From: Tubulanus polymorphus | Taxonomy: Eukaryota > Animalia > Nemertea | Assembly: GCF_964204645.1 (NCBI RefSeq) | Contig: NC_134034.1 | Coordinates: 1,798,072 to 1,862,071 of the forward strand | DNA: 64,000 nucleotides | Reading direction: 5' to 3' | In this document: positions 721-60,886 of the stretch, piece after piece | How the letters are laid out: the number at the start of each line of letters is the position of its first letter | How positions within the stretch are numbered: the stretch's first letter is position 1 | Notes under the pieces: generated by a model | Database searches by the model: none | Seen by the model: the letters and a program-made list of their open reading frames with translations, nothing else | What the model was told of the DNA's origin: nothing | Translations under genes and position numbers: made by a program

Positions 721-1732
721 TTCAAGATTTCTTGGGCAGCCAGGGAATAGACCAATAGACTGAAGGGTCTGTAGCCAAGGCCTCTGGTGTTCAGTAGGAG
801 GCTATGTAACCCAGGAGAGTGAAGACATTGGTGAAAAGCAGACGGCGTAAAGTGTCCTGGCTGCAAATTTATAAAAGTCGGTCAGCGTTTTTATTCCATT
901 TCAGTAAAACCATTGATAGAAACTGAAACAGATTCGAATATTTATTTTTTATTTACAAAAAAAAACAAAACAACACACACGAACTTTCCATCGATAATGA
1001 ATGAAGAAGCAGCAGACGCGATGTTTGATGAGACAACGTTGAAACGGAACGAGAGAGAAATTATTAACTAGAAATGAAATAAATGCCGTTTAAAAATAGC
1101 ACCTCATATAAACGTGTCAACAGACTCAGTCAGGGGGGGGTTAGTCAAAGTCCACGGGGCCCCGCTGGGGAAACCAGACACTGTCTAGTGGCTGGTGCCC
1201 CCTAGTGACTCCCTGGTATTGACGCGGTCTCTACACATCAGTTAATTCTGGATAAAAAATTTCAATAAAGGAAATTATATCTTATTCCGAGGAAGTCGTT
1301 TATCTCGGTAAAACATAAATTGAATGGTTTTGTAGGCGAAATTCTTATCGTTTACGCAAAACTTGATTTCTCGCTGGGTAGAGAATAAACGCAGGTCCTG
1401 AATGTATCGATTTAGGTGTAGTTTACCGTACTACATCAAACTAAACTAGCGATCATTCATTTATTACGTACGCATAAAATTAGACGTTATCAACCCCCCC
1501 TCCCCCCTCTGTACGCAAAATCGGCCATTTTTCATGTACATTAAGCATAACAGTACGCAATTGCACTGACGCGTACGTAATAAATTAATGACCCCATAGA
1601 CAAAAATTTATCAAATTACCTATTTCTCAAATTTGAAGGAAATTCAGGCATTTTGCTCAAATTAACAGAGTTTCTGTTAAGAAATCGAGTTGTAGGGACT
1701 CTGATAGGTGTAAAACTGGTAGGTGCTGCCCC

Positions 1733-4471
1733 CTAGTGACTGTCCGGTATAGCCGATGTAGAGTATATGGAAGAAGACGCCGGCGAACGCATCCATTGTA
1801 AATAATCTTTCATTTCGACGTCGTAGCGTTTTTTCTCCGAGTCGTACAAATCTTGATAGATCTTACGATCCTGCGGCGGAAGGTGTTGCCATTTTTCGGC
1901 GAGAACTCGACTCAAATCGTGAGCAGTCGACTCCGTTTTATGCTCCTGAAACGAACAAATAAAATCGAGAATAGGTTTAACCCTTTCAGTGCTGGCTAAT
2001 TAATACCCTATAGTGCTGGAGATAATTCGAAAATTTTGAAAAATTCCACCCTACTGTGTTGAATAACGGGAATACCACTAGTGCGTCTACACCGCGGTGC
2101 GGTGTATCGTTAGTTACTAATATTTCACTATGTTCGACAGGTGCTGCCATCTTTCAAGAGAGATAATTAGTAATTACTAATTACATCAATACACGGCAGT
2201 GCGGTGTACTAGCAAAATCCATCACTGATTCGTACACCGCACTGCGGTGTAGACGCACCGAAAGGGTTAAGCGATTGATATGTTGTTTCTCCCTCTACTG
2301 AGCTTAAAAGTTGACCCGACCGCCCGCCTATGTACCCTGTACAATCATGATCAAGCTTATCATAACAGAACCGGCAGTTGTAGAAATAAACTGCTTATGA
2401 ATTTTATTGCGGTTTACAAAATGAGGTAACCATTTTTTCGTCATAACCCCTTTTCAAAACGACACACAATGGACAGCAACAAAAAAAGAAAATACATAGA
2501 TTTTGCATTATCAAGTTATTTACCTGACCAGTGACCAAGCATTCACTGATTAAATTATAATATATCTTCAATGAGGGCTGTTTCTTATCAAGAGGCTCCT
2601 TGTGTCACTTGTCGCCAGCAAGAACAACAAGACTCCAACAATTTAAATTCCCTAACTTTCAAGAAGAGTCGGAGTTCCCTGATTTTCCCAACGGGTAAAA
2701 TGAATCTGGAATTTCAGATTTGCCCAGATCGCAAAATTTATACATTTCATTTTTTCAATAGAAACTAGGTGGTGCTGGGCTCCACTGACCTTGAAATACG
2801 CTTCCTTCAATGCCTTCGTGTTGTGCTCAGAGAACAGCACGAACGGATGAACCGGTTTCTTCGGAGCGTCACGTTCGCACTTCTCGATTTTGATCCGCTT
2901 CACGAGACTGGCCGCCGTAGACGTCGTCGCCGGGGGAGACGACGTATTGTTGCCGATAGACGTCGTCGCGACGACCGACGGGTCGGGTCTCGGTAACACC
3001 ACCGGGGGCGACACTTCCTGAAAAATGAATATCAAAATGATTAGTGTCACTGTCTAGTGAAAGATGGCGCTTCTTTCGTAAATGAATTACAATTTCTTTT
3101 GAGCTTTCATATCGATCCTCACTTGCCAGGGTTTGATTGCCTCATGCCAACTCAAACACGGCCCAAGACTTCTTGGGTGGACTGGTTCCCACTCAGTGGC
3201 GACCAGTCTATAATATCTAGCCAATCGAATGCGTTATTGTCAGAACGAATCTGGCGGTGAAAAAAACATCCGATAGGCTTAATTACATAGACTGGTGGCC
3301 GCTGAGCGGGAACCTATCCGCTCATGAAATCATACGCGGTGTAATAGACCACTGAAAGGTCTGCGGTCAGGGTTTGTGAGCTTCTTGCGGGAGGCATTAA
3401 ACCCTGGCAAGCGAGGATGGTTAAATAGATGACCGTTCAACGTACCTCCCACATAACCGGAACTTGTGCGTCTCTGAAATCATCTCCGTAATCATCTAAA
3501 CAATTCATTAACAACCTATGATAAAATATTGAGAGACCAGAAAATTACGTCTGAACAGATTAGCAAATAAAATACAGTTTTCAAGAGGTGCAACTCAGGT
3601 TATGATGGGCTGACAATGACAGTCGAGATTTGGAGAGAGGGTTGTGTCGGGCCGAATCGGTTTATTTACCTTCTTTCTTTCTTGTAGAGTTTACATAATA
3701 CTTTAGAGTAATACAGACGGTTGATTAGTTTTTCATTTGCCTGAAAAACAACGCAATCAACTGACAATCGCTGAAGACTGTAAACATAGCAGCATATATT
3801 AGAGGCAGGCGCGTTGGAAGCAATTTTTGATTGCCGCGGCCAATTGTCAGATTTTTCCATAGGTTCTAATATTTACTTCAATTTCATCAAAAATATAGTA
3901 TAGAAAGATGAAAGACGTCATTCAGTAAATTATTGCCATGGTTTTCGCCGCTGCAGTCACTACAGTTCCAACGCCAATGAGAGGGTGGAGGAGTGAAAGT
4001 GCAGGGACCGTGTGAGTTACAATTGATACAGTGAGTGGAACCATCTTGATCAATGTGAGTGTGGATGGATGATATGAATCCAGTCATTGACACAAGTGAG
4101 CTGTCTATTCCAGATGGTGACAACCATTGCCAGGACTGGTTTAACAAACAAATGGGATGAGCTCGTGACTGGAAAACTTGATTACTGGAGTCTCGATGAT
4201 GGATTGGATTATATTACTGGAGGATCGAGTGGATGAGGAAGATTTTTGCGGACGAAAAAGGAGGCCAAAAATAATGAAAATCGAAATGTGGCCCCTGTAC
4301 CTGCTGAGTTTGTTCACATTTTCGCCTCAATGTAAAGTATTTTTTCTGGTAACTGCTCTGTTTCGAGATGTTGTCCAGTATTTGTTCTAAATACGCCGAT
4401 TTGCTTCTGACTTCTTTGATTTTCTCGTCAGTATTGTCGACGTCTTCGTCGGGAACTGAAGCGGCCGCCAT
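1733..4471 (-). CDS. TFPT: TFPT/INO80F (amida)-like INO80-complex subunit with C-terminal HMG box, about 250 aa, 5 coding exons
   Basis: Exons 4471-4301, 3740-3670, 3515-3446, 3017-2790, 1945-1733; all introns GT-AG, phases consistent, 753 nt total. The segment YQKKYFTLRRKCEQTQQANEKLINRLYYSKVLCKLYKKERRLLMNCLDDYGDDFR matches the TFPT coiled coil. The segment APKKPVHPFVLFSE...LSRVLAEKWQHLPPQDRKIYQDLYDSEKKRYDVEMKDY is an HMG box. Confidence 0.85.
1981..2266. mobile_element. piggyBac-type MITE
   Basis: TTAA TSD on both sides; TIR CCCTTTCAGTGC...GCACCGAAAGGG; subterminal TACACCGC.GTGCGGTGTA repeats. Confidence 0.85.
3115..3418. mobile_element. MITE with long imperfect TIRs (ATCCTC[A/G]CTTGCCAGGGTTT)
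   Basis: ATCCTCACTTGCCAGGGTTTGATTGCCTC at the left end and GAGGCATTAAACCCTGGCAAGCGAGGAT at the right end; a related copy lies at about 540-800. Confidence 0.7.
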
Positions 4472-5261
4472 CTTTGTTATCCTTGTTGACGCATTTCGAC
4501 CGTCAGGTGCTGCCGCTATGCTCGTCGTTAGCGGATTTTTCGTGAACTAACACGAATCGACTCTGTCACGTTTACAGTGTAGATTGCCAGAGGTGGTTGA
4601 TTTTAGTTCACGAAATATCCGCTAACGATGAGATTAGCGGCAGCACCTGACGGTTAGACGATCAGGTGTCCCCAATAGGAAAAGTTAAAGTAGTTAACTA
4701 GGTTTAGGGGTAGGGTTTTCCACACCATAGGTTCTAATGTCCCAAATTCTACGTCCACCAGTGGCCTTCAGATCCAGGTCCATATCAAGCCACAAAAACA
4801 GGGTCAAAGAACTCTTAACTCAAGTATTTCAATCAACTCATCATTTATTTTTTTCACATTTCACATCACAAACGTACTAATTTTTCTTATTAGCGTTAAT
4901 GAATTAATCAATAAAAACTTTAAATAATCGATAATGTATTTGTCTATAATTACGTAGCACTTTATAATGTGTATGATATAATATTGAAGCACCCGACCGA
5001 AGGTTAGTCAGTCAATAACTGCGGTTGAAAAATCGTTTCCAAAAGACGATAAATATATTTTTAGATTTTCCAGATCAACTTATTCAAGAAGATATTAAGT
5101 ACTAAATCCACGAATTAGCCAGCCAGTAGAGCCCATTTGAACATGTCACAGTGCCAGTGGTCCTCAATCTCATCTGGTTGGGGAAACTAGGACAAGGTGC
5201 ACAGTCGAGGCTAAGATTTTAAACAAACTTAGGAATGGAAATCGAAATAGTCAATTCGAAG

Positions 5262-5822
5262 ACTTAAGATCAGTCTAAGCTCATTTTGGTTCTACAACCG
5301 ATCTAAAAACTTAGGACCAATCTAAACTTGTTTTAGCAATAACCAATCTATCAACTTGCAACCAGTCTAAGCTCATTTTGGTTCTATAACCAATCTAACA
5401 ACTTAAGACCAGTCTAAACTCATTTTGGTTCTATAGCTAATCTAACAACTTAAGACCAGCCTAAGCTCATTTTGGTTCTATAACCAATCTAACAACTTAA
5501 AACCAGTCTAAGCTCATTTTGGTTCTATAACCAATCTAACAACTTAAGACCAGTCTAAACTCATTTTGGTTCTATAGCTAATCTAACAACTTAAGACCAG
5601 CCTAAGCTCATTTTGGTTCTATAACCAATCTAACAACTTAAGACCAGTCTAAGCTCATTTGGGTTCTATAACCAACCTAACAACTTAAGACCAGTCTAAG
5701 ATGATTTGGTCTTATAGCCAATCTAACAACTTAAGACCAGTCTAAGATGATTTGGTTCTATAAACGATCTAACAATTTAAGATCAGTTCAAGCACAATTT
5801 TGGTTCCATTTCCAATCTAACA
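5262..5822. repeat. 47-bp minisatellite, about 12 units
   Basis: Unit ACTTAAGACCAGTCTAAGCTCATTTTGGTTCTATAACCAATCTAACA. Confidence 0.9.
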
Positions 5823-6934
5823 TATCGAGCCATGATTGTCCAACCGCGCCTTACAGCCTATCGTCCAACTAGGCGATAAATACCACAGTAACAACAAGCC
5901 TAAAAGCTGACAGATTCCAACATGTCCTCGCTCTACGACACCGTGTCGGGAATTATGCTATTCTGTTTATTGATTTATTCATTTAAATAGAATAAGATTT
6001 ATCCGTATAATTTATAGCAGCTCAGGCGTTATAGTGTAGAGAAAGACATAAATTAACACAAATTAAACTACCTTCAACCCATAGTAGTTCGTTCTAAATC
6101 TCATTGGTCGATGAATTCAATCAACTGTCGTTTACTAACCAATCATATACCTTTTTTCACATAAATTAAAATAACAATTTGCTAATAACTCCAGTTGAAA
6201 TTATTTTCAATTCACTCAAAAATGAAAACAGTTCCTAATAGGGACCATTTATTTATTATGTATTTTATCAATTAGTTTTCAGCGAGTTTGAGCCTTTCGT
6301 CCCATCACTGTATCTGTAGTTTACAGTTTCAGAAATTCCTCATAAAATAAACATATCATTTGACCCCCTCTCCGATTGTAGACTTATACGCATCAGACAT
6401 GACCCCCTCCCCCAACGAGCATACGTAATAAATGAATGGTCCCGTAGCATGAAAATTTCAGAACACGGAGACAAGAAGAGATTTGATTATCCATGTTCAA
6501 GTGTCGCAAGCGGAAGTTTTTCAAAAAGGTTCTACCGCCTTAACAATTCATAATTCAGTCCAGACCGTGTTTTAGTGGAGAACAGTATAGTTCGTTATGA
6601 ATCCAAGTTTTTCTTGCCACAAGCGGAAGTTTTCAAAGAAGTTTCGCCATCATAAGAATCCGTAGTCCAGTCCAGAATGCGCGTTTTAGCAGAGAAAAGT
6701 AACGAAACATCGAAATCTTTCATTTCAGATCCGCGTTTTTCGACGTATGAGAAAATTTTTCGAAAAATTTCTTTTGTCGTAAGAATCCGTAATCTAGTCC
6801 GGAATCCGTGTTTTAGCAGAGAACAGTTAGACACGCGAAACAACTGTTCATTCGGCGCGTGAATGCGTTACAAGCGCGCAGAAGTTGATTCGTACAGTTT
6901 TTCATTGTTGGACTTCGTCGTTGCGTAACCGTGG

Positions 6935-9900
6935 CTACGACAACTGCGCGAAACCGATGAGTAGATTTTCGTCGGAGGGTTCGTTCGGCCCGAAGCCTGA
7001 ACGCTGAAAACGCAGAGTAGAACTAAATTAAAACAGCCAAAAGACGGTTCCTAAAGATCAGTCATTCCTGGACATAAGGAGGTTTCGCATGTTTTTAAAG
7101 AAAATTTTGAAATTTTGAGGAAGCGTCTGCATCACTTTCATATCCCAATTACAGTAGACTCCTAAATCGGTACTGTTTATCTCAGTAAACCAATAGTGGA
7201 TTTCATCTCGGCGGTTTCGTGAGTAAATTATCACCCCTACGACTACCTAAACTTCGTTTCTAATACAGTAACCAACTAATTGGGTAAACGCAAATCCCAG
7301 TTCCAACTGTACCGATTTAGGTGTAGTCTATTGTACAACTAACAAACTTAATAAAAATATCTTATTCACTATTCCTCAATATTGAAGGAGTTTTTTAAAG
7401 AAGTTTCAGGCATTAAGCATAAATCAAAGGAGTTTCAAGCACATTTGAAAACATTTTCTGTTTAGAAGTTTTTAACCCTTTCAGTGCTGACTAATTAATA
7501 CCCTATAGTGCTGGAGATAATTTGAAAATTCTAAAAAATTCCACCCTAGTGTGTTGAATAACGGGAATACCACTATAGTGCGTCTACACCGCGGCGCAGT
7601 GTATCGTTAGTTACTAATATTTTACTATGACACATGCTGCCATTTTTCAAGAGGGATAATTACTAATTACATCAATACACCACAGTGCGGTGTACTAGCA
7701 AAATCTATCACTGATTTATACACCGCACTGCGGTGTAGACGCACTGAAAGGGTTAAGGAATCGAGGGTTTGTAGGGGACCCTGTTAGGACACATGAAATA
7801 GAATGGGTGATATTTACCAACGCAAATTTCATATTTCGCAACGACGGGTTCTCGATCACTTTCCGTAGATTCGCTCCGACTTTGAAAAAAAGAAATATCG
7901 ACGAAATTAGAGGCAGATCCGATCGCGGTACCCCCTCCCTGCCCGAGGATCGTATATTATTGTAAAAATATCGCCCACACAGTGCCCCCTAGTGATACTT
8001 ACCGACAACCATATCGGTGCCGTTCACTAAACCCGCATCGACTAATTCTAATGATATACTCTCCGGCGTATCTAGAAATGAGATCGAAATCGTATTTTTA
8101 TTGAATTGATACGATGAATTTGACGCGGTCGTTCACCTCGGGCGCGATAAGATACGATAAGATACGACAAGCTTACCGACTCCGGGAGTAAAATCAAATT
8201 TGATATCGTTTAATTCTCGTTTTTCGTTACGTAATCTGAGCACGAAGTGAAGAGTTTCCGGTTCCTGCAAAAACAATTACATCGGTGTCACCATCTGGTG
8301 GCAGTATAGAACACTACAGTGTCACCATCTGGTGGCAGTATAGAACACTACAGTGTCACCATCTGGTGGTAGTATAGAACACTACAGTGTCACCATCTGG
8401 TGGCAGTGTAGAACACTACAGTGTCACCATCTGGTGGCAGTATAGAACACTACAGAGTCACCATCTGGTGGCAGTATAGAACACTACAGTGTCACCATCT
8501 GCTGGCAGTATAGAACACTACAGTGTCACCATCTGCTGGCAGTGTAGAACACTACAGTGTCACCATCCGGTGGCTGTATAGAACACTACAGTGTCACCAT
8601 CTGCTGGCTGTATAGATCACTACAAAGTTGTTACAAAGCCGCAGAGTGGACCACATAGTGTCGCCACCTAGTGCCAGTATGTAGCACTAGGCTTGTTGCC
8701 ATCTGGTGGCAAGGCGGGATATTTCAGCGTCGCCATCTGGTAGCAGGTTAGAACAATAAATACCTTATTAGTTGATTGAGGAGAAGCAGGAGCGGGTTCG
8801 GCGTTAGTTTCAGTTTTCTACAATAAATAGAGAGAAAACGGTTACCGTTTTTTAACCCTCCACTTTTACGTTGTGTGAAATCACAAATTGGGAGGTCAGA
8901 CGTACTTTTTGAGCAACATTCTCCGCAGGTTCTTTCACCCTCGGCGACTGGAAATACAAAAAAACAAACTTTCGAGTGAAAAAGTTTTTTTCTCTGGCGT
9001 TTTCAGCGTTGGAGCGATGTATATCATAACATACCCGTTCTCCAGATACAGCAGCTTTTCCCTCCTCGGAGTTCTCATCCAACTCATCATCCGACCACTC
9101 CCACTCTCCGTCGACTGTTTTGTGTAAACGTCCACTCGAACCAGGAACGCGTTTCACCTGAAATACGTTTACAATCAGTGCTGCCCTCTAGTGGACTAAT
9201 ATGAGTGCCGTTCTCTTGAGGGTCACTGTAACTGTCACACACTTGTGTACATACAAATGCTGCCCCCTTGTGGGCTGATATCAAAGCTCTAGATTACACC
9301 ACAAGTGCTGCCCCCTTGTGGGCCCATATTAAAGTCCCTAGATTACGCCACAAGTGCTTCCCCCTTGTGAGCCGATATCAAAGTTCCTAGATTACACCAC
9401 AAGTGCTGCCCCCTTGTGGGCCGATATCAAAGTCCCTAGATTACACCACAAGTGCTTCCCCCTTGTGAGCCGATATCAAAGTTCCTAGATTACACCACAA
9501 GTGCTGCCCCCTTGTGAGCCGATATCAAAGTTCCTAGATTACACCACAAGTGCTGCCCCCTTGTGAGCCGATATCAAAGTTCCTAGATTACACCACAAGT
9601 GCTGCCCCCTTGTGAGCCGATATCAAAGTCCCTACATTACACCACAAGTGCTGCTCCCTAATAAAAGTGCTGCCCTCTATTGGACTACTATGAGCATTGC
9701 CCAATTGTGGTATTATAATACAATAACCAAGTGAACTGCCATGTACTGCCCCCTATGTGGTTTACTGTCAGTGCTATGTTATACCCACTAGTGTGCTGCC
9801 CCCTTGTGATGGATGGTGTAAGTAACAGTACCTTCTGCGGTTTGACGACAGGCGCGAGGTCCTCGATCAACACTTTACGAAGGTAAGCTTTATCTTTCGG

Positions 9901-12900
9901 TTTCTTCTGGAAAAACTCATGTTTCTTCCGCAAAAAATTGGCCGTCGGTCTTAGCAAAAAAAAAAAATAATATTCATAACCACTCGATCAGGTACGTGCA
10001 TAGACCCCCGTAAAATAATTCAAAATACTATCATGATACATCAATCCATAACGATAAGGTATGGACAAATCAACATGTCATTCATGCAAACATGTTATTT
10101 GCCCAGTTAACGTCTTTTGGAACAGGGACGCATTGTTTAAGGGCTAACCAACAATTGCTGTAAGCTCCCTACTCCTCTTACCGTTTATCGGGATCTCTTT
10201 TCAGACATTCCGAGATCATTTTTCTAAACAATTTGCTGTACTGTTTGAAACAGTCTTTATCTTCAGCTCCGGAGTCTAGGGTCGGAGGCTCGTTCTGTAG
10301 AGTTAACATCAACACCTACAGTGAAAATACATATTGAATCAAACTTCCTGATTGAGGATCCACCAGATGCGCTAGTTGTATCTGAAATGTTACTGTGGCA
10401 AATGAGGATCCACCAGGTGCGCTAGTTGTATTCGAATATTACTGTAACTGTTGAGGATTCCTTTTCTGGCAATTGAGGATCCACAAGGTGTGCCAGTTGT
10501 ATCTGAAATGTTACTGTGGCAATTGAGGATCCACCAGGTGCGCTAGTTGTATCTGAAATGTTACTGTGGCAGTTGAGGATCCACAAGGTGTGCCAGTTGT
10601 ATCTGAAATGTTACTGTGGCAATTGAGGATCCACCAGGTGCGCTAGTTGTATCTGAAATGTTACTGTGGCAGTTGAGGATCCACCAGGTGTGCTAGTAGT
10701 ATCTGAATGTAACTGGGGCAGGCAAGGAGGGAATTCACTGCAAATCATTGACTAAATTGTTGACTTGTTATATCAGATTGTTCGTCACGCACACCACCTG
10801 GTGGCGAGGCCCGTTATTACTCACCTTCATTGGAGGGTATTTATGGTAGGGGGCAGCACCGGTTGCCAGTTCGATCGCCGTGATTCCGAGACTCCAGATA
10901 TCAGCGCTGAATTTGTAACCAGTCGATAACTGGAAAAAACATATCAAATATCAAAAATATCCAGGACCTCACGTCTACAGTTCTTATACAGATTTGACTT
11001 GCGGATGAAAACATCGGAAATGAATTAAGCTTTCAGTCAAATTCAATCTGGGCCTGGTTGCATAGTCATTGTTAAGTCCAAAAGTGGTCTTAAATCTTAA
11101 CACTGGTCTCAAGTTGTAAGATTGGTTATAAAACTATGGAGGTAGACTTAAATTTACCAGTAAGCCATGACTATGGAATATTTTTATGGACACTTCTCTT
11201 GAAATTCAAACGTCTTCACATCGAGCTAACCCCTCCAACTTTAAGACTAGTCTTAAGATCGAAAACCACTTTGTGAGTTAGATCATAAAATCACGCGTCG
11301 TAAGGAATTCGATTTTCGTTTTACCTGTTCCATAACCTCCGGAGCCATCCAACACGGAGTACCAACGAACGTGTGTCGCACGGTGTCCCGCGATAAATCT
11401 TTACCCGTCGCGATCCACGCGCTTACTCCGAAATCTGTAATCAAAATCGTCGGAGTTTACACCAAGAAATACATTTTAACTCCAATGAGAGAGGGTTCAT
11501 TTTTGATTCGCAAAAGCAATTCCCCAATTATTTCATCTCTAGCCCAGAGAGTTAAGATTCGATATGCCATCATAATCGGAGCCGGAACCATCAAATGTTG
11601 GAGGATGATCAGGTAACCGGCTTGGCAACTTTTTATTGGTTGGAGCAATTTTTGAGATTCCAGATATCACCGGAGTCCCACAGATGATTCCTCCAGTGAA
11701 GCGTTGGAGTGGATCAACAAGATATCTGTGTAGAGTCAGTCTTGGAGTGAGTTTACTAGATATTACTGTATGACTCCAGCGAGTCTTGGAGTGAGTGTAC
11801 TAGATATTACTGTATGACTCCAGTCAGTCTTAATAGAGAGTGATTATACTGAATATCACCGTGTGACTCCAGCGAGTCTTGGAGTGAGTGTACTAGATAG
11901 CAATGTGTGACGCCAGTGAGTCTTAAGAGAGAGTGATTATACTAAATATCACCGTGTGACTCCAGCGAGTCTTGGAGTGAGTGTACTAGATAGCAATGTG
12001 TGACGCCAGTGAGTCTTGGAGAAGGAATTCTTTCTTACCCGCGATTCGAACGGTTCCGTCGTCTCCCATGAGAATATTTCCGGCTTTGATGTCGCGGTGA
12101 ATTTGACCGTTGGCGTGAAAATATTCGAGCCCCTTGAGAACCTCGAGCAGAACGGTAGAAATGGTCGTCTCGTCGAGCACGCCCGTACGAGAACAATTCG
12201 GCTCCGTGCGCATTTTATATTTGATTATATCCAACAGTGAACCTGAAAAAGAAAATGAAAATAATTCTAAACCGTCCGATCTAAGCACTTGCCCGGGACA
12301 AGTATATTCTCATCAGGGCAAGTAGGTTATCATTGTCCGCCGGGCTAGTGCAATTTTATGTCACAAAGCTTTTTTTCCCACTCGATATAACGGACGATAG
12401 TGCCACCCATCGGACTGCCTGTATAGGGCAAGTAGTTTTTGGAGAGGGTAAGCAACATTTCAGATATGCTTGCCCACCGGGCAAGTGGCTTTCATTCCTT
12501 AGATCGGACCCTGGTTTATGAGGGCAGAGTTACATAGATGTCACCCTACATTACCCAGGCATATCAATCTTTCAACTCAAACTCGATTGAAGTTTACCCC
12601 AGAATTCACTAAGTTGACACCAGTCTAGAACACTTCGAGCCCGGTTTGTCCCCCCCCCTGAGAATGGAAGGAACGGAATACGGATTTCGACACAGTACCT
12701 CCGCTGCACAGCTGCATGACGAGCCATAATTCATCTTTAACAACGAACGACGTGAAATAACTGACGACATTCTCGTGTTTACACTGGTGCATCGCTTGGA
12801 TCTCTTTCTGTAAGCCAGAAAAAAAAAAAACAACTAAAACGTGATTCCGACATGCGTCTTAATTCTGCTCAGGTTCCACAGAAATATTTCAGCATAAAAG

Positions 12901-15900
12901 GATCCCTACAGATCAGTTATTCCTGAATAATATCAGTTTTAAAGGAGAAAATTTCAAATTTTGAGGAGGCGTCTGCATCACTTTCATATCTCAATTACAG
13001 CAGACGCCTCCTGAATCGGTACTGTTTATCTCAGTAAACCAGTAATTCATTGGTCAGCAAATTTTTATCCTACACACTTCCTAAACTCAATTTCTAATTC
13101 GGTAACCGCCTAATTGGGTTCCTAGCACTTGGGTTTATCGGGCGCTTACCACTAACTCTTCGATAGTCGTGTTACATTTTTCGAGATTGATTCGTTTGAT
13201 TGCGCAATACTCCTGACGAGGAATACAGTAGGCCTTCTGTACAATAGCTGTAGCACCGGCACCTAAAATACAACAAAACATAAACATCCTCATTACAACT
13301 TCTCCTGACCTCATAACAACCTACTGTGACCTCCTTACAACCTCTCCTGACCTCATTACAACCTACTATGACCTCCTTACAACCTCTCCTGACCTCATTA
13401 CCTACTGTGACCTCCTTACAACCTCTCCTGACCTCATAACAACCTCTCCTGACCTACTATGACCTCCTTACAACCTCTCCTGACCTCATTACCTACTGTG
13501 ACCTCCTTACAACCTCTCCTGACCTCATAACAACCTACTGTGACCTCCTTACAACCTCTCCTGACCTCATTACCTACTGTGACCTCCTTACAACCTCTCC
13601 TGACCTCATTGCAACCTTCTATGACCTCATTACAACCTCTCCTGACCTCATTGCAACCTCTCCTGACCTCATTGCAACCTTTCCTGACCTCATTGCAACC
13701 TACTAAGACCTCCTGACCTCGTAACAACCTTCTATGACCTCATTACAACCTCTCCTGACCTCATTGCAACCTCTCCTGACCTCATTGCAACCTCTCCTGA
13801 CCTCATTACAACCTCTCCTGACCTCATTGCAACCTACTAAGACCTCCTGACCACACTATAACCTCCTTACAACGTCCTGACCTCATTATTACCCCCATAA
13901 CCTCCTTACAATCTCTTAATCCCACACCTCCCATAACCCCAGTTATTTGTTTCTGAACTCATAACCTCCATTTCTAACCCCCTTCCCTCACCTCCTTACA
14001 TCTTCGCCTGCATCTCAAGACCTGATATCACCACCTGACCTTTCACCTCACCTGAACTTCTCTATAAGACCTCCCAAGACCTCTCTGCGCCTCCCTATCT
14101 TCAACCTCCTCTGACCTGTCATCCCCTCGTTTACTTACTAGACCGAATTTACAAACCTCACGTCGCCTGCTTTTAACCTCGACCGTTCTATCATCCCGCC
14201 CTCCTCAGTCCCTTAACCTCATAACCTCGCAACCTCCCATAACAACCCTCCTGACCTCCCTTCTATTTTGTCAACCTCACAATCATATGTATGACACATA
14301 CTCAGAGGTAAATCACTCCAAAACACATCTTCTAAAGCGTATTCATCCGCATTGTTCGGCCACGGCGCGTTATTCGGCTCGTCGGGTTTTCTACGCCCGA
14401 GGAAATAGTCCGCGAAAGCTTTTATCATGAAAAACGGAGAATTGAGCGTACGACCGACCGAGCGCTAATAGTCAGTCATTTATATATCAATAATAAACAC
14501 AAGGGTTTCATAGTTACAGTAATAACTAAGGGAACCGTAAACAGATATAATTAGATACTCGTCAGGAATTTGTTTATCAACAGGTTCCTCGCGTCTCACA
14601 GCTTCAGTTCGCGCTACGCAAATAATTGTCTGATATCCAAAAACTCTACCGACGGGACTAACTCCTCGCTGGTGCCATCTTGTGGCAAAAAAATTCCAAA
14701 AATTTTCTTTTTTATTTTGACAGCAGAAACCCGATTTTTTTTTTATCAAAACGTATCCTTGCGTCACTGGTCGCCAGGAAGAACATTCAAGTTCCCCGAT
14801 TTTCAACAAAAAGAGTAAAAATTCCCTGATAATTTTGGGAAAAATACATCTGTAAATCCCTGAACTGCTTAGAACCCTGTAACCAAACCATTACCCTTAC
14901 TGACACTAGCGCCATCTAGCGGATTAGGTGACCACGCCCAACAAGTCTTGTGTTCAAGATCTCACCCAGATCCTGTTTGCTCTATTGGGAAAGTACTGTT
15001 TACAATCTAAATTTTATTGTCTGTAACCATTTTTTCATTAGGCAAAATTTTTTTTAAAGTTGGTTACCATTCTTTTTCTAAAAAAAAAAAAAAATCGAGT
15101 AGGGTGGGAGGTATTTATTTTTATCTCTTAATTAAATGTTGTGAATGATGTATGATGAATAAATAAAGCAACATTTCCACCAGAATAACTTTATCCGCGC
15201 AGGCTACCAAGCATTACAAACTTTCCGCCCTGCTACCGAGGTATTATAATGAACCCACAACCGATAAATTTGTGTCAGTTTGTCATACAGTGAACAACTT
15301 TTTGTTCACTGAAATTTACTGCTTAACTGCCCTACATTTGACATGAAACAGCTCGCTACAATTATTTCCAATTGGCTCAATTAGACGATAAAGTGGTTTT
15401 TTCTATTAGAAAAAAAAATGAGGGATTTAGTAGAGTCGGGCGAGACGCTAGACAACTCATTTTTTTATTTAGCTAATTTCATTTTGCTAGATTTTTTTTA
15501 AGTATGCAAATATTGACATTAATACGACCGGTGAAACTGTGCAATCTCAATGAACCATCATTTTTATAGGCCTAACCATTTATTTTATGTTAATTGAATG
15601 ATTGGCTTTTAATTATCAGAGTATCAGAAAAAAATAGACTCCACCATGCTGGGAGCGACTGCAGTTAGGAGTTTGCTAATTCCGTACACTTTCACCTTAC
15701 CAAACGGTAAACCATTACCCTAATAATCTTAGCACTAGCAGGATAGGACTGGCTACCTCAGCAGAAACAGATATAGGAAAATTGGGAGAAAATGGCATTT
15801 CTCGGATAAAGCATCAACGTTAATTTTTGGGTCCGCTTTTTGGGTTTTAGCGTTGTTCCGCCATTGGTTATAGGTATATTTCTTAAGTCAAAGAATTACA

Positions 15901-16485
15901 TCAGAAAGGTTGCAATTTCCGAGAGGATCAGTATAAGCCAAAGGGGTCAAATTTAGAGGTTTTAACGATCTCTATCATGTTGATGAAAAAGACAACCTCA
16001 ATGGGAAGGCAGGGGTCCAGACCCTGAGACCAACCCCTAAATCTGCCCTGCCTAGATTCGCCCCAGCTCCTGGCTGTCCGCAGTCCGAGATGAGTGGGTG
16101 TGTGTGGATTATAATGTACAACATCCAAAAATTATCATTCGAAAATCAACTTCCAAAATGAATATAAGTGTTTAAGAAATGTAATTGAAATCGCGACACA
16201 TTTTCATCGCACCAGGAGTAAAACGAGAACAGGTCCAGCTGTCGAAATGAACTCCAGAACTCTCGAACGCTTTACGCACAGACTAACCACTCTCTCGTAA
16301 ACTACCGTCATTTACACGCGATCACGTGACTGTCAACGGTTAATTCGATCGTTTTTTCGAAATTCGAAATTAACGGTTTCAGATGCGGCGATTGAACTGA
16401 GAATTTACTCACCGAGAACATCCTTCAACTCGTAATCATCTTTTTTAATCGACCACGGCACTTCCTGGTGATGATCGGCGGCCAT
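6935..16485 (-). CDS. OXSR1: STE20-family SPAK/OSR1 (fray) serine/threonine kinase, about 490 aa, 15 coding exons
   Basis: Exons 16485-16413, 13262-13150, 12807-12699, 12242-12039, 11434-11325, 10929-10825, 10315-10182, 9949-9832, 9157-9035, 8947-8906, 8817-8764, 8264-8177, 8071-8003, 7879-7818, 7003-6935; 1473 nt in frame. Motifs: [42 protein letters not shown]-motif [22 protein letters not shown] domain [18 protein letters not shown]-terminus LIGFAQLS*. Expected to be co-orthologous to vertebrate OXSR1 and STK39. Confidence 0.95.
7151..7335. mobile_element. Tc1/mariner-like MITE
   Basis: TACAGTAGACTCCTAAATCGGTAC...GTACCGATTTAGGTGTAGTCTATTGTA with TA-flanked inverted ends; partial copies at about 1290-1430 and 12995-13120. 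Confidence 0.55.
7476..7752. mobile_element. piggyBac-type MITE, second copy of the 1981-2266 family
   Basis: TTAA-CCCTTTCAGTGC...GCACTGAAAGGG-TTAA; internal sequence highly similar to the first copy. Confidence 0.85.
8285..8624. repeat. 34-bp minisatellite, 10 units, each a CTCF-like site
   Basis: Unit GTGTCACCATCTGGTGGCAGTATAGAACACTACA. Confidence 0.92.
9257..9660. repeat. 49-bp minisatellite, about 8 units, with CTCF-like core
   Basis: Unit GTGCTGCCCCCTTGTGAGCCGATATCAAAGTTCCTAGATTACACCACAA. Confidence 0.92.
10351..10715. repeat. 50-bp minisatellite, about 7 units
   Basis: Unit GAGGATCCACCAGGTGCGCTAGTTGTATCTGAAATGTTACTGTGGCAATT. Confidence 0.88.
11738..12021. repeat. About 44-bp degenerate minisatellite
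   Basis: GAGTCTTGGAGTGAGTGTACTAGATA...TGACTCCAGC repeated with alternating variants. Confidence 0.8.
13288..13890. repeat. 21-bp minisatellite
   Basis: Unit ACCTCATTACAACCTCTCCTG and variants; decays into a C-rich tract to about 14260. Confidence 0.9.
14302..14428 (-). CDS. Candidate alternative first coding exon (1b) of the SPAK/OSR1 gene
   Basis: ATG at 14428; translation [50 protein letters not shown] is paralogous to exon 1a [14 protein letters not shown]. Phase-1 donors after 14317 (GTGATT) and after 14302 (GTATGT) both fit exon 2. Confidence 0.65.
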
Positions 16486-19307
16486 TTTGACGGGTCGTAC
16501 TAATTGCCGAACGAAACCGGGCAGCGGTATGTTCATCAGTAGATTCGGTCTTGTTCATACCCGCGAACGACCACGTCACCTTCTATGCGCTGCAGCTTGG
16601 AAAGTTCGAGTTCGAATCCCATTTTAGTTGGACCGATGTCCAGATATTACGTGGGATTTTTGCAATAAATCAGAGAATGACCGGACGTTGCCTGACACTG
16701 CCCAGTGGTTGGCCGCGATCCCAGACCCATACGTGAGTCCTACATACGACAGGACAGATTGCAATGAACAGGTGCCAGACTTTCCTGTACTTGGCACTAC
16801 CCTCGCTACTCTCGGTTTCGCCGAAACGTCTGGATGACATACTCCAGAGGTCCCAGGTTAAAATCTTTGCCTTTTGGTGCCACGACTGAAAAAATCCTCG
16901 GACATTTGGTAATTGGAACTGCAAGACCCAGGACGTGTCAAAAAAATAAATAACATCGAAAGATGAACAATCCTTGTATTCTGGTGGGATTTTGAACACG
17001 GCGAAATGAAAGGTTACTTTCTGACTGATTAGGGTTTGGGTCTGGGTAAATCTCTTCCCTTATGGCCCTCTTTATCGCCTTCACACACTGAACCTTATAA
17101 TACAATACACGACTCCGTGTGAGGAAACTGTGGCTGCCGTCCCTGCATATAGTAAAAGGTCGCATGACGTTGTGATTATAACGTATGAGCCGCGAGTCGG
17201 CGCCCCGCGCGCGATCGCCTGCTCTGTGAGAGAAAGTGTGATTGATGATGATCTGTTGAGAAGTAAAAGGCTAATTTAATGTTGCAGTAATCTGTTTCCA
17301 CGTGGAGTCGGCAGACGAACCTTAATCGATTTAAACCGCGCAATAATACATTTATCATCTCGCCGCCAACGCACACACGCACGCACGCACGCGCTACTTT
17401 GCGAGAGTTCCGGTCAAACTTGCAGTTCATCTTCATCGATCATTCAGACTGCGCGGAATGGAAATTTTAATAGGATTTTAAACTCGAGTTGTCTCACTGA
17501 CATTGCCGAGGAAGGTCTCTGACTGTATAGATTATCACTAGCGGTATTACCCTCATCTCCAGCCAGTCTCTCTAAAGTTCTGGATCTGCGGCACCCAGTT
17601 TGAGACCACAGACATAGTCCTCGGACGATTTGTGGTCTTCCATTCGAAATTGTAATTTTTCAAATTCTTGTTTCAAGTTCTTGATAAGAATTTCAATGGT
17701 TAAATAAAATCTCACTTCCCTAACAACTGTGAAATTGCGCCTGTCGGATGGATTTCCTCATAGATTTCCAAACCCCGCCCGAGACCTTCGGCGTGACGTC
17801 TGTTTTATTCTGAGAAATGTCCTACTTTTATAGACCCGACCACCTTGACTTTGGCAGAACCATGTTAAGTATTTTCCGCGAGATATTTTCAGCTGTGGAA
17901 AATGTAAAAAAAAGTTGGTTGCACGCAAACAAACCACTTCTGGGTTAGAGGCGAAAAATGAAAAAAAAATGGCGGCGTTGATTACGTGCATTATATCCCG
18001 TTAAAAAACCGTTGAATTTGAAATTCGAATGCATGCCATTTTAACCGATGGTGAATAGCTCAATAAAACGGGGAAGTTAAATTGAGTAGAGAAGGGGAAG
18101 GCGGGTGAGAGCGACTGTGAATGGTTATTAAGGAGTGGAGCGGATCGCGCGGCCCGCGGCAATTTCTCATTACCACGTGCGATCGACAAGCGGATATAAC
18201 TTCCGGTTTGCCGGCGGCACCTTGCGACGTTACACCGAACTTCACGGCGCAGACGATGCCGCCGTGTGTTGTGCGTTGACATACCTCCTGGTGGTTTCGA
18301 GACTCAATCGAGCTCAGGCGCAACACACGCCGAGACACCGGGAGTGTTTTCGAAAACTGTGGTTACTTCGAGTGTCTATAAGGGTTAGCAATTTGTAACG
18401 CAACTCTCCGCGGCGGCTCTTTAAGAGGAAAAGAAATTCTAACTGAATTGTATTTGTTTTCCTGTTTCTTTCTACTCAAGAGAGAACCTGCCCAAGATCA
18501 TCTCAGCTGAAATCGAAACCCATTGGAGAATACAAGTTTGGGAATAAAAACCTACCGGACTGACGAAGAAAGGTTACTTAGGACATATAGAGACTAGCGC
18601 CCCCTATAAGGTGTCATGATTCAGAGTCGGGACGAATCTAGGGTTTAAATTTGGGGGAGAAAAAAGGGGCACCTGTTGGCCATAAAGGCACCGTATCATC
18701 TGCACGGCACCATATGTGGGCAACGTAGCAAGCGAAGCAAAAAAAGGGCGTCCATAAAATGCTTGATTTTCAACGCCATTTTAGTGCCTGGGCACTTCTG
18801 AGAACATGTCACGCTACAGAAAGGATTTCAAAATTTCAAGACATTTTTAGGGCACTTGAATTTGAATTTTGTATTTTTCTTCGCAGAGACTTTTTTTCTT
18901 TCAGACTTCTCGAAGGTCACATTCGAATTTTGAAGGTACGGTCCACCGGGTCTTATTCCCGTAAAATCCGCCATTGGACAGAGAGACTGACGAACATCCA
19001 CGCGATACAACAACGACACGCTATATTAAGCGCCCCAGTTGAATCAAGGCGTACAACAGACATGCCCGATATGAATGATAGTACAGTGACACTATGCTGC
19101 GTGTACAAGAGTGCAACGAATGCAGATTTCGTGACTGTTGTTTGTAATTAACCAATTGTAGGCAATAATTAAACGAACTGTCACTCATATCTCTAGAGCT
19201 TTACATTAGTTAAACATAAGACGACGTCGACCTTCAGGACAAACCGATACAATTATCGGTTTCACATTATTTACGTTTCTAGGTCTGACGTTGTGAATTC
19301 CGCGCGT

Positions 19308-19403: not shown

Positions 19404-19759
19404 CGGCGTGGTGCGGCGTGGTGACGAGTCAGTCACCCACGTTCTAACATAGGAGTTCCGGCACCGACTCTGTGGCAAGATTCCCTTACGATCCGCTAGG
19501 TGTCACTGCGCTGAAATATCTTCGAATTCTTCTTCCACGAGTGTGGTTAGAGTGTGGTAAATAAATCTTATCCAATCTTACCTTTCGAATCAACTTTTTT
19601 CCATTAAGGTATATATTTTCAGCAAGATCTATATGAAACGCTTGAGTTAGAAAGTGAATCTGATATCTATGCAATAGATTTGTTGGATAATTTTCGTTTT
19701 TAGAAGCCTACAAATCTCAATTTTCATTGAAATTTCATTGAAAATTAACTTAATTTCAG

Positions 19760-21433
19760 TACGAATAGCCCAGTGAAATGTTGCGCCATCTCGTGAGTGC
19801 CACCGGTACCCAATAGCACCCACGGCGTTATCGAACCCGACCCAAAGACCGGTGGCCTTCGGACACTGGCAACTATACCGTGCGCGCACTCCCTCTTCCC
19901 GCCTGGGACCAGCTGAACCCCTGAGGCTTTATTGGTAACAATGATGCAGATAACCCGTGGAAGGTGAATTATGTGTGGATCTTGTATCAATTAGATAGTT
20001 TTGTGTATTATGGTAATAGCAGGTTGAATATGAACGTGTAAATGGCCGTAGACTTGTCCGTGACGGGAATAATGTACGCCGGCCTCACTGGTCAGTAAGC
20101 ATCACCCATCCAGCGCGTGGAATAACCTCGTTCAGGACGAACTTCGGTTATCGGAGTTATAGTCGACTATTTGCGAACTAAGTGAATCCGAATGTCAGTT
20201 AGTCGAAACTAAAGTCCGGAAATAGTCGACGGACCACGGGATTTGAGCACGGCTCGCTGTAGTTCGGACCTGCGGTCAAACTCCGATATACCGCCCTCCC
20301 ATAAACCGCCATCCCCGCCTACCGCCAGGTTTTCTCAATGTACATCTCAATACAAATACATAGTAAAACAACCCCGATATACCGCCATACTCTCTATACC
20401 GCCAAAATCGTTTTGCACCGATGTGGGCCGTATGATCGGGGGTTGGTTGTAATTCTAAGATGGCCGACACTGTGAAATGCGTAAGACGAAACTATAGTGC
20501 GTTCGATTAGTTCCGACCACTAGTCGAGAGACTTATCACGAAATCCGAGGTTCGCTTAGTCCGTCACGGTAACTTCTCAGACTGTGTTAATACTATATCT
20601 GCTGCAACAGAAATTCTGAGAAAATTGTCAGCTGTATCTTTCGGTCACAGACCTAAAAATAATCGATACTCGGCCATACATCTGACGTCTGGACGCTTGA
20701 CCGCGAGACGCAAAGCTCTGTTCTAGTTCTGAGTCGTTCATCACCGCATGCAACCCCGACTGCTGGTGTAAATACCCTCCAGGTTACTATACCACCAGGC
20801 TCTCACTTTCCCCTCACCCAACTCGATCAGATCAGATTCCGTTTGACCTCGACTGGTAACGAGTTCACCTTTCGTCTGATCTCGTCTGCCCAGGGGATCA
20901 ATCAGACGACACTGGAATACTTTATATCCGTATCAATTCACATCATGGAGCAGACGTTAACGATCTCTAATCAGCAGGACCCCGCAATTCGGAATCTATA
21001 CGTGGCGCCCTCTAGACGCCGATCCAAGGTTAATGAGATCCAAGGCAATATTGCAAGCGAGAAAACCTTGGGAACTTGATTATGAAATTAGCACTTTTTG
21101 TGTGTATATCATCACACGTCGTGGTCGTGAAGCCAATACGGGGGTCTGGACGATCATTTCCAGAAAATCATGAAATTCTAGGACTCACGGCATTTATAGA
21201 GGTTTTATACTTTTTCTCAGATGAAGCAGAGACGCACAGAAGGCCTCGAGCGGTGTTTGGAAATTTATGGAGAAATCCATCCGAACAGGTGCAATTTCTG
21301 TAAGGATGAGTGTCCAATTTTCAGGTTCGAACACGATCTGTGCATCTGTGACGAACCGGGCTACCTCAATGGATTCAATTTCATCACCGCTGATACCCTA
21401 AAACCGGAGTTAACTTTAATATCCAGTCTATAA
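19760..21433 (+). pseudogene. Probable decayed multi-exon gene of unknown family
   Basis: AG/GT-bounded blocks 19760-19963 (204 nt), 20023-20094 (72 nt), 20651-21028 (378 nt) and 21221-21433 join in phase 0 without frameshift. There are five in-frame stops, all near the 5' end; the last about 190 codons are open and end in a Cys-rich segment. Confidence 0.4.
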
Positions 21434-21555
21434 AATCTTGCCTAGCTTATAGATTTCCCTCGAGGAAAAAAATAATATACCATCAAAAATATGGTCGGTG
21501 AAATGCGAAAGTGCACTTGAAATCTAGACCGTTTTCTTTTTGGTATATGGTTCCC

Positions 21556-21893
21556 ACCCCTGCTGTGGTAGTGGCACCCCTGCTGTGGTAGTGACACCCC
21601 TGCTGTGGTAGTGGCACCACTACTGTGGTAGTGGCACCCCTGCTGTGGTAGTGGCACCCCTGCTGTGGTTGTGGCACCCCTGCTGTGGTAGTGGCACCCC
21701 TGCTGTGGTAGTGGCACCCCTGCTGTGGTAGTGGCACCCCTGCTGTGGTTGTGGCACCCCTGCTGTGGTAGTGGCACCCCTGCTGTGGTAGTGGCACCCC
21801 TGCTGTGGTAGTGACACCCCTGCTGTGGTAGTGGCTACCCTGCTGTGGTAGTGGCACCCCTGCTGTGGTAGTGGCACCCCTGCTGTGGTTGTG
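21556..21893. repeat. 20-bp minisatellite, about 17 units
   Basis: Unit ACCCCTGCTGTGGTAGTGGC. Confidence 0.92.
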
Positions 21894-24374: not shown

Positions 24375-24633
24375 AGGCAGAGGCAGAGGCAGATGCAGAG
24401 GCAGAGGCAGAGACAGAGGCAGAGGTAGAAACAAAGGCAGAGGCGGAGGCGGAGGCGGAGGCGGAGACGGAGGCAGAGGCAGAGGCAGAGGCAGAGGCAG
24501 AGGCAGAGGCAGAGGCAGAGGCAGAGGCAGAGGCAGAGGCAGAGGCAGAGGCAGAGGCAGAGGCAGAGGCAGAGGCAGAGGCAGAGGCAGAGGCAGAGGC
24601 AGAGGCAGAGGCAGAGGCAGAGGCAGAGGCAGA
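24375..24633. repeat. (GGCAGA)n hexanucleotide microsatellite
   Basis: Directly visible. Confidence 0.95.

Positions 24634-41641: not shown

Positions 41642-60886
<19,245 letters not shown>

Follow-up and report, generated by a model that had tools for sequence, protein, structure and literature searches.

A 34-bp minisatellite of predicted two-part CTCF sites fills an intron of a nemertean SPAK/OSR1 kinase gene

Is an intron composed of tandem CTCF-like sites an element selected for binding CTCF, or a minisatellite that happened to multiply a CTCF-type word? To our knowledge, CTCF biology is nearly unexplored beyond vertebrates and flies. In two reviews, a single in-depth spiralian 3D-genome study is recorded (PMC10658181, PMC10658182). 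The locus considered here lies in the 268-Mb genome of Tubulanus polymorphus (Nemertea; a spiralian), and all coordinates are numbered within the window, the 64-kb stretch of DNA that was analysed.

The host gene is a SPAK/OSR1 (STE20-type) kinase gene, which is transcribed and spliced. Exons searched one by one against Pfam gave Pkinase (43.7 bits) upstream of the repeat intron and OSR1_C (27.7 bits; cut-off 22.4) in the exon just downstream, and one spliced transcript contig of run X5 contains five GT..AG introns of the gene. The repeat intron is removed in this contig, 8264 being joined to 8764, with CT..AC on the plus strand equivalent to GT..AG on the minus strand (GT at 8763-8762, AG at 8266-8265). 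Splice junction and domain-bearing exons agree with the sequence-only reading, which had placed the array inside a SPAK/OSR1 intron. The introns adjoining it in the contig measure just 87-88 nt each. The parts of the gene referred to below are:

8265-8763, minus strand: intron of the SPAK/OSR1 gene, 499 nt, defined by the spliced contig of run X5
8265-8284, minus strand: 3′ tail of this intron, its sole non-repeat part, with a pyrimidine run and the AG acceptor
8764-8817, minus strand: 54-nt micro-exon directly upstream of the repeat intron (X5 joints 8817>8906 and 8263>8763)
8177-8264, minus strand: exon in which the OSR1 C-terminal (CCT/PF2) domain begins (X5 piece 8177-8263; Pfam OSR1_C)

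Besides the 20-nt 3′ tail, the intron holds 13 head-to-tail units of 34 or 35 bp, three old and ten young. In the direction of transcription these are:

8728-8746, minus strand: site 1, the oldest unit, 12.7 bits, core end GGCGAC
8694-8712, minus strand: site 2, an old unit, 20.9 bits, the best core in the intron, core end GGCAAC
8659-8677, minus strand: site 3, an old unit, core GCACTAGGTGGCGAC, 16.7 bits
8285-8624, minus strand: young array of ten 34-bp units, delimited by TRF, 13.3-17.7 bits by position weight matrix

The repeat is a minisatellite, its head-to-tail 34-bp unit falling within the 10-100 bp class. TRF assigned the young array a period of 34, 10.0 copies, 95% matches, no indels and a score of 603, bearing out the 10 × 34-bp array described earlier, and the minus-strand unit reads as it was then quoted. 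Each young unit comprises TGTAGT, an 11-bp spacer, the 15-bp core CCA(C/G)CAGATGGTGAC and a final AC. The three remaining sites, previously taken for non-tandem singletons, are in fact diverged older units of the same array, at a pitch of 34 and 35 bp. The core of site 1 begins 20 nt past the 5′ splice site, its unit overlaps the 5′ splice-site region, and its 11-bp spacer is identical to that of the array at 9 of 11 positions. Site 3 is followed by a diverged stretch of 52 nt, which ends in the first TGTAGT. Core endings divide the units in the same way, with GGCGAC or GGCAAC in the old and GGTGAC in all of the young. An upstream module had been claimed beside the core, and TGTAGT is found at a gap of exactly 11 bp 5′ of the core in the ten young units; in each of the three old units the hexamer matches at 4/6 positions only (TGAAAT at gap 11 in site 2), and the premise that both modules are present applies to the young units and not to the old. 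Among the old units, cores are better kept (37/45 positions) than the DNA between them (23/38; Fisher P = 0.048).

Resemblance to CTCF sites was assessed with matrix MA0139.1, p values being taken from a first-order Markov null, and with a strict IUPAC test independent of the matrix. Scores of the 13 sites run over 12.7-20.9 bits, each with p ≤ 7e-6. The top young-unit score, 17.7 bits (p about 3e-7), was not attained in 20,000 shufflings of the unit, the best of which scored 15.3 bits, and the CTCF core earlier claimed for the unit is thereby upheld, as is its advantage over shuffled units. Relative to the strict core CCASYAGRKGGCRS, old units have 1-2 mismatches and young units two: A for S at position 14 and T for C at position 12, the latter a base with a frequency of 7% in the matrix. 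The amplified core carries a CpG>TpG change (C>T) at a strongly conserved position. The complete two-part site spans 32 bp of the 34-bp unit.

A protein suited to such sites is encoded in the genome. The CTCF gene was located by the probe C..C.ARFTQS as L031 (contig C3, about 3.43 Mb), which has 11 fingers in conserved order. With three exons searched apart, its best PDB match was human CTCF (7w1m_H; E 4.2e-68 and 5.5e-62), and the matches are colinear with human CTCF residues 216-373 and 375-521. Two other routes to the gene were abandoned: Pfam zf-C2H2 was uninformative, with 3243 candidates, and the degenerate probe FRTVTLLRNH gave a control-level match only. The sequence-only reading presupposed a CTCF gene in this genome, and L031 is a clear orthologue. 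Its YDF motif is retained (...MSIYDFKEE... aligned with human ...VSVYDFEEE..., residues 216-235); in human CTCF this motif makes contact with cohesin. The 14/15-bp CTCF core is read by ZF3-7; here the recognition helices of ZF4-6 are those of human CTCF save one V/L difference in ZF5, those of ZF3 and ZF7 are unlike human at 2-3 positions, and those of ZF9-11 have a partial likeness only.

Because a canonical CTCF is present and its ZF4-6 helices match human, the array probably provides up to about 10-13 co-oriented candidate CTCF sites of moderate strength, and these predicted sites are probably bound by CTCF. Their co-orientation with transcription, also claimed earlier, holds for the SPAK/OSR1 gene, where it was shown. 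Judged from sequence, the premises of the sequence-only reading hold, and its interpretation as a whole appears partly supported.

Binding might nonetheless be blocked by the C>T change, by gene-body chromatin or by crowding, leaving an ordinary intronic minisatellite with a CTCF-like word in its ancestry. This explanation fits the two departures from the strict core, one of them at the conserved C; it also fits the wealth of minisatellites of every kind in the genome and the rarity of the core variant, which is absent elsewhere, compared with at least 1245 genome-wide occurrences of the canonical CCASYAGRKGGCRS. We consider it unlikely, since the matrix score is still high (17.7 bits) and the ZF4 helix, which reads the core triplet holding position 12, matches human. 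In vertebrate CTCF sites a T is tolerated at this position, though infrequently. Compensation by the added TGTAGT would also be expected, because affinity is about 3-fold higher with the upstream motif (PMC12885311).

How did the array arise? At up to three mismatches the 34-mer has no match outside the array in the 268-Mb genome, and the exact 15-bp core of the young units has no other site in it, which argues for local birth and not for insertion of a transposon. A transposon origin was also rejected on the content of the intron, which holds only units and splice signals, without flanking mobile-element features. In an independent WGS run, X6, depth was about 13x over the array vs about 6.4x in the flanks, and this roughly twofold depth in one run hints at copy-number variation. 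SNPs at 8370 and 8442 fall on positions that vary between array units, as expected under between-unit exchange. No read-level length variant is among those listed for the array, and contigs break inside it. Minisatellites are plentiful in the window: its 64 kb hold 23 TRF clusters, or 22 distinct arrays once the cluster nested in the focal array is discounted.

The reading that we prefer, at a little short of an even chance, is a young minisatellite of local origin that has multiplied one genuine CTCF-type site in a formerly short intron. With unit 1 and the 3′ tail alone, the starting intron would have been about 57 nt long. Replication slippage or unequal exchange may then have amplified a version that had gained a perfect TGTAGT 11 bp upstream and had also lost the core CpG (GGCGAC -> GGTGAC). 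Neighbouring CTCF molecules would crowd one another and occupancy would probably be partial, because the two-part site takes 32 of the 34 bp. The expansion may have been a near-neutral by-product, enlarging an already dense same-strand block of CTCF-type sites across the gene, and the array would not have been purpose-built as the copy-number-tuned insulator suggested by the sequence-only reading. Counted for this local, near-neutral origin were the age gradient of the array, the short neighbouring introns (87-88 nt), the minisatellite-rich genome and the X6 depth.

The near-palindromic core (CACCA..TGGTG; 11.8 bits on the plus strand) contains the E-box CAGATG, and the RNA of the intron is more stably folded than its shuffles (z = -4.8), so that another zinc-finger protein or a bHLH protein, hairpin formation in the DNA or structure in the intronic RNA might account for the repeat in place of CTCF. 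This is very improbable: the fold is explained by the self-complementarity of tandem near-palindromes, and the word over-represented genome-wide is the whole 14-bp CTCF core and not the E-box. The hairpin was rejected, two units as DNA folding at an unremarkable z = -1.7, and so was a known RNA family, Rfam giving sub-threshold miRNA-model noise in the array (20-24 bits vs gathering scores of 62-88).

CTCF-type cores occur genome-wide at about 80-fold above the reversed control. Repeat-unit enrichment was tested over 264 kb, where 4 of 42 sampled arrays carry the motif and about 90% are without it; motif-bearing arrays are nevertheless about 10-fold above what the density of non-repeat sites predicts (4 vs 0.4 expected), and three remain when the focal array is left out (vs 0.39 expected). 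An unrelated 49-bp array with CTCF-type cores occupies the next-but-two intron of the same gene in the same orientation. A 154-bp CTCF-motif array was seen in L029. From 1193 to 14925 there are eight independent clusters of sites, every one of them on the minus strand (P = 0.008), and site orientation turns mostly plus at 19.5-26.7 kb. The excess of motif arrays, the 49-bp array, the conservation of the old cores and the 8/8 minus-strand clusters were counted as hints of constraint, against neutrality.

These hints bear on a second explanation, in which the array would be a selected multi-site CTCF element, serving as a directional cohesin barrier or insulator or as a Pol II roadblock that aids recognition of the 54-nt micro-exon, with copy number setting its strength. 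We regard it as possible but rather unlikely. The full two-part sites at vertebrate spacing speak for it, as do the YDF motif of the protein, the block of co-oriented sites across the gene with its switch of strand, the occurrence of two unrelated motif arrays in introns of one gene, and the enrichment of the motif among repeat units. In vertebrates, moreover, the upstream motif is needed for insulation and a tandem group of CTCF sites is a better insulator than a single site (PMC12885311, PMC11417384). Inclusion of weakly spliced exons is favoured by CTCF bound within them or up to about 1 kb downstream (PMC8373115), and the first site here starts 20 nt past the micro-exon; against this, the sole transcript contig simply contains that exon. 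Selection also sits poorly with a T at core position 12 in an amplified 15-mer used nowhere else in the genome, with old units that are without the full upstream module, with an array that is young and unique, and with the steric crowding of neighbours 34 bp apart.

The spacing of the two modules bears on a bolder proposal. A genome-wide search for TGYAGT-N(8-14)-core returned 106 matches vs 1 in the control, and a scan of gaps 0-30 placed the hexamer at gap 11 in 7 of ~40 independent loci (1.3 expected; P about 3e-4). Two-part sites account for 13-15% in vertebrates vs 106 of at least 5747 cores here, where they lie mostly within a few repeat families, and none of the 54 local sites outside the focal array has the upstream module. 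No such module is reported from Drosophila, and the ZF9-11 upstream motif is possibly vertebrate-only (PMC12885311). That the CTCF of this spiralian reads vertebrate-type two-part sites through ZF9-11, and that full-length sites are preferentially multiplied into footprint-sized minisatellites serving within genes as directional barriers of graded strength to cohesin or Pol II, seems to us decidedly doubtful. If it were true, the upstream module would predate vertebrates and the sites of the intron would form a natural dosage series.

Should CTCF bind, 10-13 full-length sites in one orientation would stand close together in an expressed gene; this natural series would be convenient for asking whether site number tunes cohesin blocking or Pol II passage, and could address whether the two-part geometry is ancestral to bilaterians. 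Should it not, the array would be one more case of a minisatellite-prone genome multiplying whichever word is there.

A literature search on CTCF-motif arrays in nemerteans (Lineus) and in a Helentron or minisatellite context found none of this kind reported. The nearest relatives are the mammalian CTCF-bound tandem repeats DXZ4, FIRRE, ICCE and the 1q23.3 tRNA VNTR (PMC6985041, PMC3218863, PMC4041453), which are likewise head-to-tail with a CTCF motif per unit; their copy number is polymorphic, and a boundary or loop-anchor role has been proposed or shown. The mammalian units are kilobases long, hold much besides the site and are intergenic or lncRNA-associated, whereas the 34-bp unit is one predicted site alone and its array takes up a spliced intron within a housekeeping kinase gene.

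Vertebrate two-part sites combine an upstream CTGCAGTTCC-like motif, bound by ZF9-11, with the core bound by ZF3-7 (PMC12885311, PMC11417384), and in mouse the gap is 11 at HS-94 and HS-38 and 12 at HS+66 (PMC11417384 Table 1). The present unit resembles HS-94 and HS-38 in having a TG(C/T)AGT hexamer 11 bp 5′ of CCA and a total length of about 32-34 bp, and differs in that the hexamer is TGTAGT, not TGCAGT. As at the roadblock of CD45 exon 5 (PMC8373115), a short exon has intragenic CTCF-type sites close by on its downstream side, although here they are candidate sites from sequence and the exon is included in the one transcript contig. The annelid Dimorphilus (PMC7854359), also a spiralian, shares a CTCF orthologue and abundant CTCF-type motifs near or inside genes; its motifs are mostly single and at promoters, with no directional arrangement, whereas those described here are tandem and strictly co-oriented over about 15 kb.

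Within the same genome, a subtelomeric two-part repeat family has the common core consensus and the arrangement TGTAGT-N11-CCACCAGATGG. This family and the 154-bp family are dispersed and multi-copy, unlike the single-locus 34-bp unit, the spacer of which is unrelated to theirs. In its unit length, its ten young copies and the variants recurring between units, the array is like an ordinary intronic minisatellite (VNTR), from which it differs in that each unit matches an entire two-part transcription-factor site, as shuffled units never do.

A spliced transcript contig from run X5 joins 8264 directly to 8764 on the minus strand, skipping 499 nt bounded by GT..AG, which sets the focal intron of the SPAK/OSR1 kinase gene at 8265-8763. 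Pfam searches with single exons placed the opening of the OSR1 C-terminal domain (OSR1_C, 27.7 bits) in the exon downstream of this intron and Pkinase matches in exons further upstream.

8764-8817, minus strand: micro-exon of 54 nt, directly upstream of the focal intron
8818-8905, 8948-9034, 9156-9829 and 9950-10181: other introns spliced out in the X5 contig
8728-8746, 8694-8712 and 8659-8677, minus strand: cores of the three old units
Young unit, minus strand: TGTAGT, 11-bp spacer GTTCTATACTG, 15-bp core CCACCAGATGGTGAC, then AC

The 54-nt micro-exon and a second one of 42 nt (8906-8947) bridge the conserved S-motif exon (9035-9155) and the C-terminal domain, with introns of 87-88 nt in between. 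Upstream of the first kinase exon, minus-strand ORFs at 14219-14428 and 16405-16536 each offer a possible N-terminus ending W..(N/K).D(E/D)Y.L.DV, which makes them candidates for alternative first coding exons or promoters. Just past the last mapped kinase exon pieces lies a very high-copy palindromic element (7700-7757, and 7663-7751). It reaches ~2,500-5,000x depth in raw WGS reads, shows joints of the "opposite strands" type at 7700/7719 along with numerous loose ends, and looks like a MITE; its match to a mir-497-like hairpin is weak and sub-threshold (29 bits vs 62).

Tandem Repeats Finder resolved 8285-8624 into 10.0 copies of period 34 with 95% matches and zero indels, confirming the array as first described; the fourth base of the core is C/G in four of these young units. 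The sequence-only reading had set three singletons beside this array. However, successive old-unit cores are spaced 34 and 35 bp from start to start, the DNA separating them aligns to the inter-core segment of the array at 10/19 and 13/19 positions, and the 20 nt from the 5′ splice site to the first core hold a spacer identical to the array spacer at 9/11. The intron is therefore a single 13-unit array, old in its 5′ part and young in its 3′ part. Non-repeat sequence is confined to its last 20 nt, a pyrimidine run plus AG, in keeping with the earlier description of an intron almost wholly made of sites. Because the two adjacent introns measure 87-88 nt each and unit 1 plus the tail alone would leave an intron of ~57 nt, the array has most likely lengthened an intron that was originally short.

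Scoring with approximate JASPAR MA0139.1 counts gave 12.7-20.9 bits for 13/13 sites (each p ≤ 7e-6, first-order Markov null). The unit scored 17.7 bits, a value equalled by none of 20,000 shuffled units (best, 15.3). Without recourse to this matrix, the window contains 19 copies of the IUPAC core CCASYAGRKGGCRS with at most one mismatch vs 0.39 expected, and the genome 1245 without mismatch vs 16 for the reversed pattern. Matches of at least 14 bits numbered 16 vs ~1.2 expected in a 200-kb mid-contig sample (drawn from nine further contigs plus a remote part of the contig that holds the window), and site density in the window is 4-7 times that of this sample. Among the matches listed, exact CTCF-type cores cluster near contig ends and are few mid-contig (e.g. 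0-3.4 and 29.7-31.7 Mb of the 32-Mb contig C1), so the dense window fits its place 1.8 Mb from a contig end.

A degenerate probe for the conserved finger-7 peptide matched contig C3 at ~3.431 Mb, and three exons were translated there and searched singly.

G000:C3:3429870-3432901: CTCF orthologue (L031); exon 1 ~57-830, exon 2 1399-1839, exon 3 from ~2040

Human CTCF (7w1m_H) is the top PDB match of exon 1 (E 4.2e-68, colinear with residues 216-373), which holds a YDF motif and ZF1-5, and again of exon 2 (ZF6-10; E 5.5e-62, residues 375-521); exon 3 encodes finger 11 with FRQKQLL and an extra C2H2-like finger (HECSECSKIFAHKGNLLRHMAMH). SIYDFKEE of the orthologue aligns opposite human SVYDFEEE; in human CTCF the YDF motif contacts cohesin. 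The recognition helices of fingers 4-6 match human with a single V/L exception (finger 5). Two or three positions differ in each of fingers 3 and 7, and conservation is partial in fingers 9-11.

The reading we tentatively place first, at close to an even chance, is a young expansion that arose locally from a single genuine site and that CTCF can probably still bind. Old-unit cores end in GGCGAC or GGCAAC and all ten young ones in GGTGAC, a CpG>TpG change where the approximate matrix has 7% T; the amplified version is a weakened core. The window holds 22 distinct minisatellite arrays (from 23 TRF clusters, of which one lies inside the focal array), and ~90% of 42 arrays in 264 kb are without a CTCF-type motif. 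SNPs of other samples at 8370 and 8442 sit where units differ among themselves, a pattern expected of exchange between units. Polymorphism extends to the old units: relative to the window, 8716 G>A, 8749 T>C and an ATAA insertion after 8720 are found in X1 contigs and X6 reads, and 8718 G>A in X1 contigs only. Array depth of ~13x vs ~6.4x in the flanks, from X6 raw whole-genome reads of a different sample and study with no length variant listed, suggests more copies than the ten assembled. Short-read contigs of other runs end inside the array, which is probably a VNTR of variable copy number. Insertion of a mobile element was ruled out, since within 268 Mb neither the 34-mer (≤3 mismatches) nor the exact 15-bp core is present outside this array.

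A selected multi-site barrier, as first proposed, ranks second and appears less likely, ahead of an unbound relic, the least probable of the three main readings. The hints of constraint that bear on it all come from small samples. Motif-bearing arrays number 4/42 vs 0.4 expected from non-repeat site density, and 3 vs 0.39 without the focal array (P ~0.007). Old-unit cores are 82% kept vs 60% for inter-core DNA (P = 0.048). Intron 9156-9829 is filled by an unrelated 49-bp x 8 array (9253-9659, minus strand) with CTCF-type cores oriented as in the focal array.

9179, 9668 and 9794, minus strand: single sites flanking the 49-bp array; cores CCACAAGGGGGCAGC-type, 14-20 bits (array included)

Between 1193 and 14925, a span that includes two minus-strand genes (kinase and HMG-box), 8/8 independent clusters of sites of at least 12 bits lie on the minus strand (P = 0.008). 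CTCF-type sites at 19490-26689 are mostly on the plus strand, giving a divergent arrangement around the 5′ end of the kinase gene, near 16.5 kb; such arrangements are typical of vertebrate domain borders. Full occupancy of adjacent units seems unlikely on geometry, because the full two-part site (upstream TGYAGT-like hexamer plus core) would cover 32 of the 34 bp, and the N-terminus and first two fingers of one CTCF would clash with finger 11 of its neighbour. The first interpretation is partly supported, with a real array of CTCF-type sites and, in the genome, a canonical CTCF, the lack of which would have refuted it; CTCF binding and an insulator, pausing or tuning role are putative.

The core is near-palindromic, and the tandem arrangement of such near-palindromes explains why folding of the intron RNA surpasses that of shuffles (z = -4.8); a DNA hairpin was rejected (two units, only z = -1.7), and no Rfam family came near threshold in the intron. 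Another recurrent word, GAGGATCCACCAGGTGTCGCTAGTG, is similar to the CTCF core but reads GTGTC in place of GGGGC/GGTGGC.

10467-10720, 25503-25775, 44497 and 52830-52982: GAGGATCCACCAGGTGTCGCTAGTG word, in its own 50-bp and 77-bp arrays; also genome-wide

Speaking against use of the upstream module in this genome, exact two-part sites make up < 2% of cores genome-wide, and 0/54 ordinary sites in the local sample carried it. In favour of its use, the genome has 106 matches to TGYAGT-N(8-14)-core vs 1 for the control. In a scan of gaps 0-30 between hexamer and CCA, with arrays and obvious families collapsed by eye, gap 11 accounts for 7 of ~40 independent loci vs 1.3 expected per bin (P ~3e-4), and gaps 11-13 together 13/40. 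Other gap-11 loci have unrelated spacers and include a subtelomeric repeat family and the C6 array. Elsewhere in the genome, locus L029 holds a 154-bp array with a CTCF-type motif.

G000:C6:107756-109280: tandem array, TGYAGT plus CTCF-type core, period 78/112 bp, gap 11
C7:392451-393321: the same, period 45 bp, gap 13
C9:337657-338480: the same, period 160 bp, gap 6

In 13-15% of vertebrate sites, ZF9-11 read a CTGCAGTTCC-like motif of 10 bp, which is reported not to be found in Drosophila (PMC12885311). Mouse sites named as module-bearing are HS-94, HS-38 and HS+66 (PMC11417384); counted on these, the gap is 11 bp in HS-94 and HS-38 and 12 bp in HS+66. Upstream hexamers of the old units match at 4/6 each, which also speaks against use of the module. 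The proposed match to both modules holds for the ten young units, which join a strong core to TGTAGT at exactly 11 bp in 10/10, the gap of HS-94 and HS-38.
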